Assembly (NCBI GenBank): GCA_964036045.1
Contig: OZ038379.1
Span: 13,082,001-13,146,000, forward strand
Reading direction: 5' to 3'
Source of the DNA: Eutreptiella sp. 'Long Island Sound 2002'
Taxonomy: Eukaryota > Protista > Euglenida
Length of the DNA: 64,000 bases
In this document: in pieces, positions 38,210 to 47,954 of the stretch
How positions within the stretch are numbered: the stretch's first letter is position 1
Layout: every line of letters starts with the position of its first letter
Program-made: the position numbers and the translations under genes
Notes under the pieces: model-generated
What the model was told of the DNA's origin: nothing
The model's database searches: none
The model's input: the letters and a program-made list of their open reading frames with translations, nothing else

Positions 38210-39469
38210 TCTCCAACTGGATTGAGGTGTCCCCCTTGATTCAGTGCATGTTCTGCATCACTCAGTGATCTTGTGGTTGGCACTAAGACCCGCGACAAAA
38301 GCTCATGGACCCAAACAGCCGATATGTCACTCATGGCAAGTTCGTCAGCCTTGGACCACCTTCTGTGCTTCGATTCCCACCTGCTGCATTGCCGTTTTGG
38401 GCCCACCCGCGCCAGTCGCCCGGGCTAGGGCGTTGCTGGCGTCAGTGAAAGGAAGCTTGATGACACACATGCAACTACGCAAGACAGACTCTTGTGATCC
38501 TATTACCCTGGAACATTGCTGCATATCCATACCAGGAGGTGCATGTGTTGACCGCCATGTCGCATTGGGGGCGTGAGACTAGCCAAGTGCCCGCCCATTG
38601 TCGTTGTTGATTGTAGTTTTCTATGGTGGTTCTTGGAGGTTGTTGAGTTGGTGAAAAGTGAAACCGTCTGTGTGTGTTTGGGAAGATTGGATCTAGTGAC
38701 TGGTGCTCCTACTAGGTCACGCAGGTTCCGCGCAGCTTCCCGTGGTGGTCGGGGCTGTGCAATAAACCTATTCAGCCATAGGCCATGAGGCAACGGAGAC
38801 TGGGCTCGCATACGCCCCCGTGTCACAGGCGCATGGTCATAACCACATTGTTCAGTGTTTTTCTCGCCGCACTGCAGCGCAGACCAGTTCTGTACCACAC
38901 CAGGTGGTTGCTGACTGTGCTTTGGCTTCGGTCCTCTGGACACTGAGGTCAGCTCACACCCACCACCCTCCCACAGTGCCGGTTAGTCTCTAACCCTTGC
39001 CCTGCAGGTCGTGCCCTTGTCATGCACTTGCTCTCTGACACGTGTGGACGTGTCGTACCCGAACCTCGGGGGCGCAAAGGCGCCTTTGGTGGCGCAAAGG
39101 CGTCTCAACATTTCAACAAAAGTTCCGGCTGCCGGTCACCTCAACAGATCATTGCTGTTTGGCGCATACCCTTTCAGTACCACACCATGCGTGCACATTC
39201 ATGCGCATGCTGTTTGCTTTTTCTTGCCCGCTGACTTCCAGCTGCCTCACGTGGGCCGCACTCTCGCAGCCCCAGTCATGCTTCGGCTGTTCAACACGTG
39301 ACGACGTGTTGAGCCTGTGGCTCAGGGGCGCTACGGCGCCCTGCTTTTTCATTTCTTGACTGTTCCGTGTTGCCGTGGCGTCCCTTTTACCCTGGTCAGC
39401 TCGAACCCACCCTGGTCAGCTCGAACCCACCACCCTCCCTTTGCGCCGGTTAGCACCGGTCTCTTGCTC

Positions 39470-39703
39470 TGTGGGTCTCTCTCCTACTCTCTCCCTCCCA
39501 TTCTCTCTTGCTCTCCCCTGCTCTATCTCTCCTGTTGCTCCTCTCTGTTCCTTTCCCGCTGTGCTCTACCCCCTCTCTCTCTCTCTCTCTCTCGCCCAAA
39601 AAAGGGGGGTTCGGGTTGTTCGGTGCATCTCAACCCCCCCCGGGGTTCGAACCATCCTCCACGGGACAGAAGAGGTGTGGTGTATCCACTGAGCCACGAC
39701 AAT
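39470..39703 (-). mobile_element. tRNA-derived SINE-like sequence with GA-rich tail
   Basis: Minus strand: A box TGGCTCAGTGG (39686-39696), B box GGTTCGAACCC (39643-39653), T6 (39598-39603), then (GA)n. The cloverleaf stems do not pair. Confidence 0.6.
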
Positions 39704-39977
39704 AGGGTATCTGCACCATGCGCTCCACTCTTCTTCTCCTTTGTGTCACCCCCTGTCATGCGTATCTTCTTTCGCATGGAGGTGTGTTCAGCAGTGTGTA
39801 GAGGAACCGCACAGCGTCCCCGGGTACCGGGTCCGCCTGCCTGAAGAGCGTTCTTTGGAACAACCGCAAGAGGTCCGCTCGGCCTGCCAGCCACACATGC
39901 ATGCAATCTCCAGTTCTGCTCACCGAGGAGGGCACCGCTCTGTGTCCTTCTGCCGTCGGACAGTGGAGGATCGCCTC

Positions 39978-40904
39978 TCACTGGAACGGGTGCCACTTGC
40001 CTGCACTTTTGGGTCGCCACTGGACCTGCATGTTCGCCAGAGCCTGGGACTTCAGGGTCCAGTTGATCTGGACCATCACCGAGTAGAGCTCTTGATTGCT
40101 CATCAGCAGTGGTTCCCCATGGTTGTCCATAATCTCACAGTGCATCCTGGTGTCATGTGGTTGGTCCAGTCGGAGCCAGATCTGCTGGTTGCGGGCCCAG
40201 GCCATTGTAGTCAGCTCTGCCTCAACTGCTTGCAGTCCTTCGTTCGCAATGGCGTCCAGCTGACTCAGTGCTTGCACTTTGAAACGCTGGCGTTCTTGCT
40301 GTGGCTTGACCTTCTTTGGGGTTGGCTGGATGTGTGTGTATGGGCCATACCGCTGCTGTTGTGATCCCTTCTCCTGCTGTGCCTTTCCAGGCGGCATAAC
40401 GCCTGGGTGCCTGTCCGCGGCAGAACGCGGCGTTCAGCTGCTTGGAGTTCTCCTTTGCGTGCTGCCGCTCACTGCGACAAAACGCAGTTCATGTGATGCA
40501 AACTCTGCGTCAGAACACAGATTTTTCAGACATGCATTGCTGTGCTTGGAACCTCTGACAGCACCATTGTGCAGAGGCTACTGGCTCTGTCCTTATCGAC
40601 CCTGTCCCGGGTTCCTGCGTTTCCTGAGCCTCCGCTTCTTGCGCTGCCGCCTGGTGTCACTCACATCAGTGCTGAAGGACAGTGTGTCCGCTGCTGACAG
40701 TGCACTTGACAGCACTCCCTGGTGTGTGTGTCCTGTCCTCATTTCCTCACTGTTTGTACTGCCTGAGGAGTACGGTCCCATTTCACGTGGCGCTGGCTCC
40801 CCGGATGCTTCCCCTGTCAGTTCATCACTGTCCATGGGTACCATACCCAAGGATGACCAAAGTGCCCTGGTGCCCTCTGACTCTGATCCCGAGTCTCCCC
40901 TCAA
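39978..40904 (-). pseudogene. Putative further C-terminal extension of ORF2 (Ser-rich and basic linker plus about 140 aa of unknown domain)
   Basis: ORFs 40593-40904 and 39978-40397 share one frame, broken by TAA, TAG and TGA. One added base at about 40910 would join them to the RNase H frame. Confidence 0.5.
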
Positions 40905-40906
40905 AC

Positions 40907-41788
40907 CTACCTAGACTCTGACCCTGAAGATGAATTTGGTGCAACATGCTGTGACCATAGTGGGCTTGAACACATGCCTTCCATGGCCAATCCATTCGCC
41001 ACCTCATTTCCCTGTACGTTGACATGTGCTGGGACATGTTCCCACCTGACTTCTCTTCCCGGCGTCACCATTTCCTGGAGCAGCATTTCCCAGACTGGGA
41101 CATGGACTTGCAGTTTTCCACATGTGGTTGTCCATCCCTTTGACTTCCAATGTTGGGCCCTGCCAGTCGCTCCCAGCTGCAGGTACTGCGAGTCGGTGAG
41201 GATTGCCAGTTTTGGCACCCTGAATCCCTGTAAGGCTTCCACGGCTGCCCAAAGCTCTGCTCCGTTATTTGTTTGCCTGTGACGTGTTGGTACGTAGCCA
41301 CAGAAGCGCACCTCTGGTCCTTGGTCATCTTCCGCCGCGAACACGCCAAATCCCCCGGCCCTGCGCATGTACTTGTGGCTCAGTCGCTTCGACGATCCGT
41401 CAGTGTACACTATCCTGTAGCCCTTCTCCACCAGTTCTGCAATCAGATCTTGCACTCCTTGTAGCACTCCCGGGCCTGCCTGCCTCGGGCGCTTCGGACG
41501 TGATTCCGTTGCCCTTTGCCAACTATGGTTGTCGGCTGATTTCTCTTGGGCGAAGCACTCCGTGTGTGTTTGCCACCATGCATTCAGTCCCCCATGTACT
41601 TGCACTTCCCCTTGTCGCGGCTGCACTCCGGTGTCTCGAAGTTGTTCCAGTGATTTTTGAAAGCCTTTCCATTGTTCCCTGCGCTCCCCTGTGTAAAATC
41701 CCACCCACTCACATAGCTCCCTTAGCCATGTTGTTAGGTATGACGTGAACACTGGCGACGCTCCTGCCTTGCCTTCGCATCGATACCG
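40907..41788 (-). pseudogene. RNase H1-like domain, in frame with ORF2 beyond a single TAG
   Basis: YTDGS...QTNNGAELWAA...ILTDSQY...WEHVPAHVNVQGNEVANGLA. Same frame as 41789-45325 (41788 minus 41752 = 36 nt). Confidence 0.92.
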
Positions 41789-44700
41789 CTAGTGGGCACT
41801 TCGTGCTGACCACATCGCCCAGCCTTGGTTCGTTTTCAGTAACCATTCTTGGTCGTCAGACTCCATCATATCTCGGACTGTGGATGTCCCGTTATCAGTT
41901 GTCACCTGACCATAGTAGTGCTGTACAACCGCCGCCGCCGCTTTGAACATGGGGCATTCGACCATCGCGTGTTTAACCGTCTCCTTTTGTGAGCACACCG
42001 GGCACTTGTCAGTGCCTGACCTCTTGTAGACTCTTGCATGTACGGTCAGTTTGTGCCACAGCGCCTTTCGCGCAAAGGCTTGAGCCCTCGGTGGTAGCTG
42101 TGCCTGTGCCAACTGTTCCCATACCTCCTGTGTTTGCGGGTCGCGGACCCCTGGCTGAGAGGCGTAGAACTGGAGCAGCCATGCCCTGGTCCAGTTTTGG
42201 GTATGGACTGCGGGGGTATCAAACCCCCCTTGTGACGGGACTTTGTTGAGGAGTCGTCCGCCATGATTGTAGACCCCTTTCCATGTCCGAGGCAGTGCAT
42301 TGAACAATCTTGCATCCTCCAAGGTTTGGAATTGACCCCACGTCAGCACCCCCTGCCGGATCAATTTCGTGTTGTAGTAGGAGCAGCGGAACTCATTTCG
42401 GAAATACACAGAGTGCCACAACGGCAGGCGGTCCCGGTTTGCCGGGGGGGCCACCTGCGGGGCCACTCGCTGAATGTTGGAGTGTGCCTTCGCCGACCAT
42501 CCCAGAAATGTGAGATCTGCCGTTCGGACCATGCCCAGTTGAATATATGGAAGGTTGTCCTTGGATGGTGTGAACCCTATGGCTGTTGCCCATGCATAGA
42601 AGGTCTCCACTGCCTTGTCCGGGAATTTGTGAGGCTCTCCCAACAGGCTGACGAATGGAGCCGCTGCCTGGTGCATAAGAAACAGTTCTGGTTCTGGCAG
42701 TGCCAGTCCCCCTTGCGCTCTTGGTCGTGAGAGGATTGGTAGGGTGATTCCCCAGCTGTTGGTACCCATAGTCACGTGGTACACCAACTTCAGTTGTCTG
42801 ATCACCGAGACTGGGGCGTAGTACGCCTTGGATACCCATGCCACGACCGGCAGAATCCATGATGTCAGCATGAATGCACGCTCGTTCATGGACAGTTGCA
42901 GCGTGGATACCACCCTAGCGCGACGGAAGGCCTCTTGCAGTGCTGGTGCGAAGGCCTGCTCTATCGTCAGCCCCCATCCTTGGTCGTCTTGTTGGTGCCG
43001 AATATTCCCCAAGCGTACACCCAGATACTTGACGAAGATTTTGACATCCACTCCAATGTCCCGAAAGCACCTCGCCCACTCCATTCCCCCACAGTTGCGA
43101 ACTATCGCTGCCGTTTTGTTCAGGTTGACCTTCAACCCCGAAAACTGTCCAAAACGTGAAACCACTTCCCATACCCTCTTCAACAGCTGTGGGCTGGCTC
43201 TTCCATCAAAGAAAATGATGAGGTCGTCTGCATACATCATGACAGTCAGTACTGGACCCGGGTCTTGTAGTGGGAAAATCACGAAGGATGCCACCAGGGA
43301 GAACAGTGCCGGGGAGAGTGGATCCCCCTGGCGTGTGCCTGCCCTCGGGGGGTGGTAAACACCTGGGACGTATCCTTTTCCAACGGAGTATGGATACGGT
43401 GCTCTCAAAAGGTGCAGAATCAGACGGATATACAAGAATGGTATGCACATCAGACCCAGCGCTGCCGACACCATCTCGTGAGACATCGTGGGGAAAGCAT
43501 TTCTGAAGTCTACTGATAACGCCGATCCCTCACTTAAGCCATCCCAGAGTGCCCGTGACCCATAGACATGCTGGAGTATGCTTCTGTGTGGAAGGAAACC
43601 TGTTTGCTGTGACGGAATGCAGTGGAGGAGTACATCCTCTAGCTGGATCAGGAGGATGTTGGTGAGCCACTTCTGCCTTGTAGTTTGCAGTGCAATTGGT
43701 CGGAGCGAATCTGGTGTCTGCATCGCCTTCGTCTTGGGGATCATTGTCACCACTCCCGAGGTCCATGTCTCCGGCATTTTGCCCACTTCGAGGAAGCGTT
43801 TCATTGATTCATACATTTGCGGTTCGAAGATGCCCGAGAACCTCTTGAAGAATTTTGCCGAGAAACCATCCAATCCAGGGGAACTGTTGCTGTTTAGCCT
43901 CTTAAGGCCTTCATGAACTATGTCCAGGGATAGTTGCTTGAAAAGGAGTCGACCTGCCTTGCGCAGCCGCTGTTCCACTCCTAACGACTTCAGATAGGCC
44001 ACACATTCGTCTTCACTGGATCCTGTCGGGGTGGACACTTTGTCCCAATGGCCCACCAGCTCTTTTGCCACCGCCTTTGCCCCCCGTATCGCTGAGCCTG
44101 TCCTGGATACCAGCTGTTGAAGTTTCTTTCGCTCCTGCAACTCCCGCATTAACCGATACAATTCGTTCCTTTGCGTTCTCGGATCTCCTGAAATTTCCCC
44201 GGTTGTGATCACCCCCTTGAGCTTGGACAGTGTTTCCATGCCCGTTCTGTCACGCTGAGCTTTTTCATACACCCCCACCAGGAGGGTGTAGGCTGCTGCC
44301 GCATCTGTTGCTGCAATCCCCAGTGATGATAGAAATTGGTAGACCGCTGGTGAGATAGAGTCTCTCGTGGAGCCACGCACGAACCGTAGGGCTTGTAGCT
44401 CTACGGACTGTTTTTTGTTTTTATGTTCCCTTTGGTGGCTGATCGCCTTCTTTTGGATGCAGTTCAGTGCTTCTTCCCACCATTGATCCCCTGTTGACTT
44501 GATAGACTTGAGAGAGGTCTCCAGATCTTCCGTTGCCTCCAGGTCTTGAAGGATGGTCTCTGGGCAGTAGAATCTGGGGATTGTGTCCTCTGTGTCGAAA
44601 GACTGGGGTGTGAATTCAGCCAGGATCGCTTTGTGGTCTGAGTTGGCAGCAAACATGGGGTACACGCTAGTCGCCAGGCTCAGCAATTCGGATGTTGTGT

Positions 44701-45437
44701 GGATGCGGTCAATACGGCGTAGCCTCTGCGGGTCAAGTCGCTCTCCTTCTCGGGGGTAGCCGTATGTGAAGCCTGTCGGACACGATGCTTCCTTGTCCTT
44801 GATGTCCGTCAGGGTTGGACAGTGAATATCCACCCAAACATCCTGCAGACCCGCTTTCGCCAAGGTCGTCACCTCCTGGTCTCTGGCACGTAAGGACGTG
44901 TCATGCTCAAACTCTGGGGGTGCGAAGGCGTCCCTGTGTTTTACAACTAAACTATTGTGATCAGCACATAAAATCAGGTTTGGTCCATGTAACTCCTTGG
45001 CGATGTCTTTCCATTGCGACTGTCGACGCGTGTGCTTGTGGTGGAAGTGGACCACAACTATGGTGATCTCCAGTGGACCACTCGACAGTGAGGCTTTCGG
45101 CGCCCTGGGAGACAAGAACTTCATTGATTGCAGTGTCCACTTGGATGTTTTCCACGCCAGTGCCACTCCTCCCCTTCCTTCTTCATGAAGTGGTCCGTCC
45201 AGGCCATACCCGTACTTTGACAAGCACTGCATGCCCGCTTGACGATCCTCCACCGTGACGAAGTGAGGCTCTTGGATGGCGAAGAAGTCCACCTCCAGGG
45301 ACCGCAGCAGTGACCCTAAGGCCACTATGCGCTTTTTGATTACGCTTTCTCATGGTTATTTTTGTTTGAAACCCATTGATATTTTGGGACAATACTCTGA
45401 GCGTGCTGCTCAGAGGGACACTGGATGCTGACGTCAT
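41789..45437 (-). pseudogene. LINE ORF2: APE endonuclease, reverse transcriptase and CCHC finger (one frameshift near 45350)
   Basis: APE motifs SQNING, AIQE, ADHN, RIDRI, SDH. RT motifs LRPIAL, VDFRNAF, RQGDPLSP, YADD (43223-43234), YLG. Finger CPVC...ETVKHAMVEC. Confidence 0.95.
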
Positions 45438-47032
45438 CGTGCTGCCCCATTGGACGACGAAGCCTCATCTTCCTTCAAGTCCCGCTTGCGTTTGAGGGAG
45501 CTGATGACCTTGTCGACTTGGTCATCCAACTCCATGGCCTTGGCCATTTCTCCCGCCGTGATTAGGCCTTGCCTGCGTGTCTTCGAGTCGTCTGTGTTTC
45601 TGGGCCGATCTGTGATTCGCCTTTTCCGCGCCTCGTAATCCGCCTCGGAAATCACAAACATCGGAGGCATCCCAGAATCTGACACGTAGACCTTTCCAAT
45701 CAGCTGTGTCACACTTTCCCCGGTCAACCGCCATGTGGCAGTGCGCATCTCCCCAACACTCCATCTGACGCGGTCCGCGATGTACCGGCAGTGCACTGAA
45801 GGAGCAAGGGCCTCAGTCAGGTCCGAGAGGTACCACCATGGTGCCACATCCAGAATGTACACTGTGCCCACAAGGTCCTTCTTCCATGTCGAGGGAACTG
45901 TGGGCTTGGAGATGATATCCCTATCGAGGAACTGTCCTGTCCTCAGGTCCTTAAAGACGGCCCCGATGGCACCCACCAGTTCACGGTACCTTGTCTTCAA
46001 CAGTGAGTGCCCAGTTTCTGTGAGACCCAGCAGCAGTTTGCTGGGCCCCAGCACGTGGATTTTCACTGGCGATTGAGCCTGCAGAACGCCCGGGATTGTC
46101 CAAAACATCGCGAGGACTGAGGCATACAGCATGGGGGACCATGTTTCCTTGTGCGTCTTCTTGATCCACACCTCATAGACAACAGCCATGTTGGTCAGGT
46201 TGGCACCACGATACCATTCCACTGGCTGGATCTGGAACCTTGGCTTGGATCCGAACTGTGATACCACAGTATTCACCTGTTCCTCATTCAACTCCGTGAA
46301 GAACAGCTTTGAGTTCCGTGGGTCTGCCCCCGGGAGGAGATGGACTTCATCAGAGTTCAGGCCAATAGACCCCAACAGCCCGTTGATTGGGTCATTGTGA
46401 ACCTGCACAGCGTATTGGTTATCCCGCACGTCTGGCTCGTGGAACACCACCTTGTCAACTTCTGCCCCAAGCGTCATAAGCCGCAGAAGCTTATACGTTG
46501 GGGACGGAGATAGGCTTCTGGAATCCCTTGTGCTGCTTGCAATCCAGACATCTAATCGATCATGTGTGCGCATGTGCATGAGGGACCTGTCCGCCATTTG
46601 CAGCTTTTCGCAACCGAAAGGCAAGTTCGAGTTGAGGGCGAGTGCCCGATTGAGGAATGATGGCCTGCCATCATCATCACTGACAGGTTCAAGCAGGATT
46701 GCAACAAGGCGGCCCAGCATGGGCAAATCAGCAAGCAGTCTCTTAATTGCATGTTGGACTTTGTCATATTCAGTCATTTCCCCAACGAGCACAACATTGG
46801 GGCGACTGCCGTAAAGGACGGCAGCGAGTTTTTCAGACGAGTCGCAGTCCTTGAAGAGGTCGTACGACAGGGAGGCAGCCTCTGGAACTCCACTCTTCAG
46901 CACCACTTCGTCCTGAATGATATAGTCGGCGTCATCGATGGCTGCCAAACACGCCAATTGACCGGCGTCGGCAGGAACGATGAGCTCGTCGCCTGGCGTG
47001 GCCAGACGGGCCTGGGTGTCCCGGACACTCAT
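45434..47032 (-). CDS. LINE ORF1 protein (about 530 aa); possible RRM-like region near the C-terminus, no CCHC knuckle seen
   Basis: A long open frame directly upstream of ORF2. An in-frame upstream ATG at 47098 is separated from it by one TGA. The stop overlaps the ORF2 start (ATGA). Confidence 0.85.
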   Translation of the reverse strand: MSVRDTQARLATPGDELIVPADAGQLACLAAIDDADYIIQDEVVLKSGVPEAASLSYDLFKDCDSSEKLAAVLYGSRPNVVLVGEMTEYDKVQHAIKRLLADLPMLGRLVAILLEPVSDDDGRPSFLNRALALNSNLPFGCEKLQMADRSLMHMRTHDRLDVWIASSTRDSRSLSPSPTYKLLRLMTLGAEVDKVVFHEPDVRDNQYAVQVHNDPINGLLGSIGLNSDEVHLLPGADPRNSKLFFTELNEEQVNTVVSQFGSKPRFQIQPVEWYRGANLTNMAVVYEVWIKKTHKETWSPMLYASVLAMFWTIPGVLQAQSPVKIHVLGPSKLLLGLTETGHSLLKTRYRELVGAIGAVFKDLRTGQFLDRDIISKPTVPSTWKKDLVGTVYILDVAPWWYLSDLTEALAPSVHCRYIADRVRWSVGEMRTATWRLTGESVTQLIGKVYVSDSGMPPMFVISEADYEARKRRITDRPRNTDDSKTRRQGLITAGEMAKAMELDDQVDKVISSLKRKRDLKEDEASSSNGAAR

Positions 47033-47112
47033 GCGGTCAGGGGACAAGGAGGTGGCGTCGGCGACAGTTTGTCAAGGCCCAGCGGCCCGGGCAAGCATGG
47101 ACAAAAAGACAC

Positions 47113-47139
47113 CGAGAAAAAAATAGACACTCAGAAAGC
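47113..47139 (-). other. Genomic copy of the euglenid spliced-leader exon
   Basis: Minus strand GCTTTCTGAGTGTCTATTTTTTTCTCG versus the Euglena SL exon as I recall it, ACTTTCTGAGTGTCTATTTTTTTTCG. It lies 14 nt upstream of the ATG at 47098. Confidence 0.9.
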
Positions 47140-47954
47140 ATAGGGGGGGCGGGGGTTACTGTGGTGTGGGGTCGGCTAGCTTCTCTCTCAAGGCTTGAAC
47201 GGCCTGGATTATCCGAAACTGGAAGAGGCCCAACTCAGCCCGTAGTTTGTGTCTTTATACATCGGAATCGAACGGGCAAATGGTCGGCCAGAACGCCCGA
47301 ATGCCCCTCTTGGGGTCATTTTGAGCCCCAAACAAAAACCCATGTTGTGCCCAAATCCGCGTTTTTTGCCACTTGGCACCCACAGGGGGTCTCAAGGCGG
47401 TAAAAGGCACGATCTGCTATGTGCACCACGCGTAGCGCATTAGAATTTTTTTAATTTTTCGTAACTGTCTTATAATGTAGGCCAAGTGCAAGGGGTTGTG
47501 GTGCCCTGCATGTGAAAATTTTGGGCAATAGCACTGTCGACAAAAGGGGCCTCAATGCAGTACTAACAGCAGAAGATTGTGTACCATACAATGGTTCCCT
47601 CTTCGGGAGGCAGGGGGGCGGGCTTGGCTAGACCTCATCATGCATCCATGTGTCTCGGTGTGTTGTGCAATTTCTACTCTGCCTTTTGTGCTCCTAGGAT
47701 AGCCCAAGGTGCCTTGGTGGCACAATGTGTGATGTTGCACTGACTAGCTGGGACACAGTTTGCTGAATTGAGCCTCCATCCTGGCCGTCGGGTGTTTTTA
47801 TACCCCATGTGTGATAAAATGTTCTGCGATTGATTTCTCTCTCGGTTGCTGTGCAGAAACCACCAATTTAGCCTCAATGCGCAACCACGGCAATAATAGC
47901 ACCCAAGAGAACACTCCCCTCGTGCTCTCGTCTCATCTCTCCTCCCTCTTCGAG

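Follow-up and report, generated by a model that had tools for sequence, protein, structure and literature searches.

How does a LINE come to begin with the spliced leader (SL) of its host, and how is that leader passed on from one generation of copies to the next? The question is raised by an element on the minus strand of a 64,000-nt stretch of the Eutreptiella genome (hereafter the window), which runs from 47138 to 38781, measures 8,358 nt and starts with a copy of the SL exon. As a LINE it is of the APE type and has an ORF1 and an ORF2, but this copy is dead; its homology to other copies of the family ends exactly at 47138 and 38781. No further fragments of this LINE family were found in the window outside these limits. 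The element and its immediate borders are made up as follows, in window coordinates:

47143–47155, minus strand: poly-C tract C5GC7, directly upstream of the 5′ target-site duplication (TSD); part of the target site, outside the element, and present in the empty-site contig
47139–47142, minus strand: 5′ TSD copy, TATG (possibly CCTATG), from junction mapping and the empty site
47113–47138, minus strand: SL exon copy, SL positions 2–26 plus one inserted C at 47116, sequence CTTTCTGAGTGTCTATTTTTTTCTCG
47099–47112, minus strand: first 14 nt of the element-specific leader, GTGTCTTTTTGTCC, resembling SL positions 10–26
47072–47098, minus strand: uORF of 8 codons, ATG to TGA, in the ORF1 frame and closed by its stop
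45434–47032, minus strand: ORF1, 532 aa from the ATG at 47032, without a Pfam family
40596–45437, minus strand: ORF2, 1614 aa in intact copies, broken here, from profile searches
45391–44600, minus strand: APE domain of ORF2 (approximate)
43741–43010, minus strand: RT domain of ORF2 (approximate)
42136–41942, minus strand: zf-RVT domain of ORF2 (approximate)
41413–40976, minus strand: RNase H domain of ORF2 (approximate)
38781–40595, minus strand: 3′ UTR of ~1.8 kb, ending ...CCGTTGCCTCATGGCC, without a poly(A) tail, from end mapping
38777–38780, minus strand: 3′ TSD copy, TATG, from junction mapping and the empty site

Read along the minus strand from 47155, the 5′ boundary is thus an uninterrupted series of C5GC7, TATG, CTTTCTGAGTGTCTATTTTTTTCTCG, GTGTCTTTTTGTCC and the ATG at 47098.

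What kind of LINE is this? In the window copy, which is dead, ORF2 is interrupted by one TAG (41791–41789) and by two frameshifts, one near 45350 and the other near 40910. The description of the element as an APE–RNase H LINE, made from the window alone in an earlier note on this DNA, was confirmed on an intact relative, P0001, which matches the Pfam families Exo_endo_phos (4e-5), RVT_1 (1.4e-22), zf-RVT (5.6e-8) and RNase_H (3.6e-22). The Exo_endo_phos match scores 23.9 bits, slightly below the 24.5 cut-off; P0001 carries the APE-like motifs QNINGF, IQEPH, CADHN, RIDRI and SDH, and comparison of its residues 1–290 with PDB sequences gave no match. The RT is of the LINE type (RVT_1 at 9.7e-24 in one search and at 1.4e-22 for P0001), and its best match among solved structures is human L1 ORF2p (E 1.7e-18), with R2 next. 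The domains of ORF2 follow one another in the order APE, RT, zf-RVT and RNase H, which is not the arrangement of an element with a C-terminal restriction-like endonuclease. For ORF1 (532 aa), neither a Pfam family nor an informative Atlas neighbour was found. At the other end, the element terminates in ...CCTCATGGCC without poly(A): a poly(A) or simple-repeat tail is absent throughout, and every copy whose end was mapped stops at ...CCTCATGG, after which come C's. Such a 3′ tail is not obligatory in LINEs.

Is the 5′ end of the element truly the euglenid SL? The SL 21-mer TTTCTGAGTGTCTATTTTTTT matches the window once, as compared with 0 matches in 100 shuffles, and the exon of genuine SL RNA genes in the same genome reads identically; together, these two results bear out the proposal that the element starts with the SL. 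The extra C at 47116 is missing from DNA-run contigs of other copies, which carry the canonical T8CG instead. We recognised SL RNA genes by their common intron (GTATATACTCGCTCC...) and by a linked 5S rRNA gene ~530 nt upstream on the same strand; the units that contain them are >99% identical over 3 kb. Those at L031–L039 and L041 (G000 C1) are spaced about 25–35 kb apart, and in 2/10 SL RNA genes the exon ends in CA, not CG. Variant SL RNA genes are found at L119, L122–L127 and L134–L138; some of them combine an A16T exon with the usual intron, and others have quite different introns yet share CCACTTTGTGG ~45 nt into the intron. An Rfam search of the window returned nothing at gathering score.

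The SL is by no means confined to its own genes and to this LINE. The 21-mer has 5,085 genomic occurrences, and a sample of 30 SL sites comprised 10 SL RNA genes, 3 copies of this LINE and, for the rest, other SL-led sequences. Some of the latter occur at two loci with different flanks, as does a C-type lectin ORF that begins 16 nt past the SL; an OTU protease ORF behind an SL was found at a single locus (L040). Other SL-led loci besides L040 are L042 and L051, L052/L055 and L056/L060, and two related SL-led families (24% identity) encode an unknown protein.

The junction between SL and LINE proved to be a property of the whole family. We searched 2.28 Gb of genome, in which all counts are lower bounds, and found at least 394 occurrences of the 27-mer with which the element-specific leader opens and at least 301 of a 27-mer across the SL junction (1 mismatch allowed in each case); the reversed-pattern controls for both 27-mers gave 0 matches. 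Among copies that failed the exact junction pattern, 19/20 sampled had a variant or 5′-truncated SL (altered in a homopolymer, by a point change or by the loss of a few 5′ bases) and 1/20 had no SL. When copies were selected by BLAST, independently of the SL, 26 out of 30 started with it and the remaining 4 were 5′-truncated at the boundary or just inside. Well over 90% of the copies that reach the first base of the element run on into the SL. Their upstream flanks are mutually unrelated, bar two pairs of duplicated loci. Copies of the family also cluster: the copy at L015 has the 3′ end of another copy 320 nt upstream and a 5′-truncated copy 63 nt downstream, and L118 contains three copies of the family inside 15 kb.

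We mapped both ends in 16 copies. On the 5′ side, the order is flank, C run (7–16 in 14/16 copies), a short sequence X, occasional extra bases and the SL; on the 3′ side, it is ...CATGG, C run (2–13), the same X and the flank. X is duplicated over at least 4 nt in 11/16 copies (69%), as compared with 4% of mismatched control pairs. These TSDs bracket the SL together with the element, and the TSD of the window copy is TATG. The corresponding empty site was found in a contig of run X6, which joins 38780 to 47139 with a single TATG and a pre-existing C tract. Because the TSD lies outside the SL, the SL belongs to the inserted cDNA and the poly-C to the target. The family thus has the dispersed copies, TSDs and 5′ truncations of a LINE, and it inserts beside poly-C tracts. 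Since poly-C is absent from the other SL-led families in this genome, the preference for it is a trait of this LINE. Two further arrangements were seen at SL-led loci. At L043 (G000 C1:1042700-1042780), the 3′ end of this LINE plus C5 directly adjoins an SL, a second full SL and the relic SL of another retrocopy, which looks like a nested insertion at a C run. In the related SL-led retrocopies L046 and L059, the SL is immediately preceded by a (TG)n microsatellite, which may reflect the target choice of some other retroelement.

Taken together, hundreds of copies, unrelated flanks, an exon-precise junction and TSDs outside the SL bear out what the earlier note had suggested, namely that the element takes the SL with it when it is copied back into the genome. 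A complete SL exon that sits within the TSD and meets the transcript body at its exon end marks these copies as SL-tagged retrocopies. We are highly confident that the transposition intermediate is an SL-headed RNA and that the SL does not stem from targeting of SL genes. Target-primed reverse transcription proceeds to the very end of this RNA, and so the SL comes to lie inside the TSD of each full-length insertion. From the geometry of the junctions, the first nick would fall in the G run of the bottom strand, able to pair with the terminal ...GGCC of the RNA, and the second 3–12 nt downstream. The SL itself was probably gained by trans-splicing in an ancestor, because the junction lies exactly at the end of the SL exon, the start of the leader is relic-like and two copies carry an SL plus a relic. 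A round of capture and re-splicing in that ancestor is plausible.

Could the SL have reached the boundary in another way? It might be target DNA, with the LINE inserting into SL RNA genes as SLACS, CZAR, CRE and NeSL do, and the presence of an SL at the boundary is the one observation that fits this idea. However, the flanks do not match the SL RNA gene repeat, a comparison that had been set beforehand, and the window flanks in particular resemble no part of the SL RNA/5S unit. The SL intron GTATATAC is missing, the SL being followed by GTGTC in the LINE copies, the TSD lies outside the SL, upstream flanks differ among copies and the endonuclease is APE-like. Site-specific insertion into SL RNA genes is refuted by these features, and we give it practically no credence. 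Alternatively, the RT could switch template from an SL-less element RNA onto SL RNA or an SL-capped mRNA and so add the SL. The untidy joining of 5′ ends would suit this mechanism, since some junctions contain filler or extra nucleotides (38 nt in L023), but switching is expected onto the 3′ ends of RNAs and should yield variable junctions, whereas the SL is joined at its exact exon end to one fixed element position in >300 copies. We thus consider template switching very improbable. Chance similarity, an assembly artefact or cDNA contamination would make the junction spurious; given 0 matches in shuffles and reversed controls, and given that the junction is also seen in independent runs and in another assembly (L117), we see next to no prospect of this.

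The SL-headed RNA has a short leader. The absence of a long 5′ UTR holds, with 80 nt between the SL and the start of ORF1, and longer 5′ UTRs in other copies, which it had been decided beforehand to look for, were absent. The ATG at 47098–47096 is indeed in the ORF1 frame and separated from the SL by 14 nt, as first described, but an in-frame TGA (47074–47072) closes it into the 8-codon uORF, and ORF1 probably starts at the ATG at 47032. The uORF stretch was found in 30/30 sampled copies (≤4 mismatches). Because of its resemblance to SL positions 10–26, the 14-nt sequence that follows the SL could be a decayed relic SL; a more distant family has the same SL|GTGTCTTTTGGCCCATG leader. From the internal AG of the SL to just beyond the ORF1 ATG (window 47129–47033, minus strand), the sequence is A-poor and free of AG over 102 nt. 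No other AG-free stretch of the element is as long, but P is only 0.08 by shuffling of the segment itself, and we give the stretch no weight in the argument.

Relic SLs are found elsewhere in the genome. We counted 198 sites with an SL and a relic SL in tandem (for example G000 C1:55396082-55396119), some arrays having two relics. Most of the relics are cut directly after the internal AG of the SL. Two types of relic junction occur, CG|TGTCTA (after the internal AG) and CG|AGTGTCTA (2 nt earlier, not after AG), and relic SLs genome-wide begin at SL position 11 or 9. In this LINE family, the order SL, relic SL and element is present in 2 copies, L109 and L112.

How is the SL renewed now? The earlier note had supposed that the element may rely on host trans-splicing instead of an internal promoter. 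The evidence does not support this, in that SL-bearing copies lack an AG acceptor at the junction, only 2 of ~400 copies are re-spliced and the junction is stable across diverged lineages. SL-bearing copies read ...TTTTCG before GTGTC, that is, CG and not AG, and no young copy with AG|GTGTC was found in the assembly when we searched it with the patterns DGGTGTC... and HGTGTC... and with the exact 16-nt AGGTGTCTTTTTGTCC. Apart from SL variants in which CG has become TG or CA, the two patterns picked up nothing but truncations and two copies that have neither an SL nor an AG. Two matches to AGGTGTCTTTTTGTCC were considered as acceptor sources and rejected: the sequence downstream of L114 is unrelated, making it a chance match, and L115 is an older copy in satellite with a private 13-nt deletion. 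An acceptor-bearing source could lie in unassembled DNA or differ within the 16 nt searched.

The progeny tell a similar story. If SL-bearing copies were transcribed from outside and re-spliced at the AG of the encoded SL, relic-bearing progeny would be expected, and only 2 of about 400 copies are of this kind; forms with a 5′-transduced flank were not found among the copies. A single SL with this same junction heads the young family, an 88% identical subfamily (L139, L141, L045) and the 84% identical copy L117, a full-length copy from the other assembly whose SL and next 47 nt are identical to the canonical form of the window copy. These subfamilies and lineages have diverged by 12–16%, and the more distant family has the same junction; the first ~300 nt are the best conserved part between subfamilies. 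Since new sources are themselves retrocopies and the junction is stable across lineages, inheritance of the SL through DNA is the easiest explanation. We therefore lean towards the view that SL|GTGTC has by now become a hard-wired, DNA-encoded junction and is not freshly trans-spliced in each round. The conserved 5′ region of source copies would then drive transcription from the encoded SL or its immediate neighbourhood, much as Pr77 does (see below), and fresh trans-splicing would be a rare side route only. More tentatively, and with somewhat less than even confidence, we propose that the encoded SL and the conserved leader together mimic the beginning of an SL RNA gene and so serve as a promoter or initiator that the element carries with it. 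If so, the RNA of the LINE would be born with its SL and would need neither trans-splicing nor an upstream promoter, in parallel to Pr77, to which transcription factors of SL genes are recruited.

The main rival to a hard-wired junction is that each round acquires a fresh SL: a precursor from one or a few source loci would be trans-spliced just before GTGTC, and the SL-bearing daughters would be dead ends. Such a process would account for the exon-precise junction and for a canonical SL in subfamilies 16% apart, and L109 and L112 show that read-through followed by trans-splicing happens. A tree built from 1.5–2 kb per copy, with very short internal branches, is comb- or star-like, as is typical of few sources, a shape that also fits few long-lived source loci. 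SL variants do not track this body tree (L023/L026, L015/L001, L140/L009): close sister copies differ in their SL variant (L140 vs L009, L144 vs L023), and the A16T+G26A form of the SL is shared by two lineages of the body tree. As variant SL RNA genes exist, A16T included, the scattered variants could be fresh SLs drawn from a variant SL RNA pool, but hypermutability explains them too. The variable sites (A16T, T17A, the CTCG form, CG to TG/CA) are CpG or adjoin the T8 homopolymer, and the DNA of E. gracilis is heavily CpG-methylated (preprint 10.64898/2026.05.21.726589); such hot spots weaken the argument from shared variants. Fresh trans-splicing also has to contend with the lack of any young AG|GTGTC copy, the sole element copy with AG|GTGTC being the older L115, and with the junction shared by diverged lineages, since sources that are SL-bearing retrocopies should give relic progeny, of which there are 2 in ~400. 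On balance, we judge a fresh SL in every round to be unlikely, if still a serious contender. The small share of probability left over goes in part to template switching, SL-gene targeting and artefact, which together take up a minor portion of it, and otherwise to routes that we have not thought of.

Relatives of the element are also present outside the assembled genome. Estuary metatranscriptome contigs (runs X1 and X2; window 46300–47400) contain sequences 90–95% alike, the SL junction included, and thus related elements exist in wild euglenids. Some of these contigs extend into upstream flank or poly-C, so that DNA or read-through transcripts may be their source; as contigs, they cannot show transcript starts.

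What does an SL-headed LINE mean for its host and for LINEs in general? LINEs must rebuild their own 5′ end in every generation, and use of the host SL as that 5′ end is a route that we did not find described in the literature searched. Our full-text searches returned SL-tagged retrogenes in dinoflagellates, with Paulinella as a possible case; for euglenids they yielded neither LINEs headed by an SL nor retrocopies with one. The element combines a LINE with SL-tagged retroposition, both of known kinds, in a combination that we did not find reported for euglenids. Whether the leader is spliced on or transcribed from DNA bears on transcription start in Euglena, where promoters are almost unknown. 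In practice, the SL tag and the poly-C signature are simple markers for annotating retrocopies and for dating LINE activity in this 2.3-Gb genome.

Among the closest known systems are SLACS, CZAR and CRE1/2 of trypanosomatids and NeSL-1 of nematodes, which insert into SL RNA genes and use a restriction-like endonuclease. Like them, the window element is a LINE that adjoins SL sequence in an organism with trans-splicing. Unlike them, it has an APE-like endonuclease, its targets are dispersed and adjacent to poly-C, and its SL lies inside the TSD. In its general plan, it resembles the L1-like LINEs, among which its best matches would place it, with an ORF1, an ORF2 composed of an N-terminal APE, an RT and a C-terminal zinc knuckle, TSDs and 5′ truncation. 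It differs from L1 in having an RNase H followed by a 130-aa tail, no poly(A) and a specific 3′ end, and also in its poly-C target, its unrelated ORF1 and its SL 5′ end.

L1Tc/ingi elements, which are likewise euglenozoan APE/RT/RNase H LINEs with a conserved short 5′ end, carry Pr77, an internal promoter that is bound by TBP and SNAP50 and whose transcripts are unspliced (PMC1874656, PMC8190864). Pr77 is a possible model for how a 5′ end may be regenerated without an upstream promoter. The two cases differ in that Pr77 transcripts carry no SL, whereas here the 5′ end is the SL itself.

A parallel for the SL tag comes from dinoflagellates, in which SL-tagged retrogenes and relic SLs were reportedly described by Slamovits and Keeling in 2008. 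Retrogenes of this kind and relic spliced leaders are the marks of mRNA recycling (PMC5585692, PMC12014239). As in dinoflagellates, retrocopies in Eutreptiella are headed by a DNA-encoded SL, and tandem relics are cut after the AG of the SL, with 198 genome-wide and 2 in this LINE family. The present case differs in its euglenid host, in that the RNA bearing the tag comes from an autonomous LINE with about 400 copies and no poly(A) tail, and in that relics hardly build up in the family. It extends mRNA recycling to euglenids and, beyond passenger genes, to an element that is itself autonomous.
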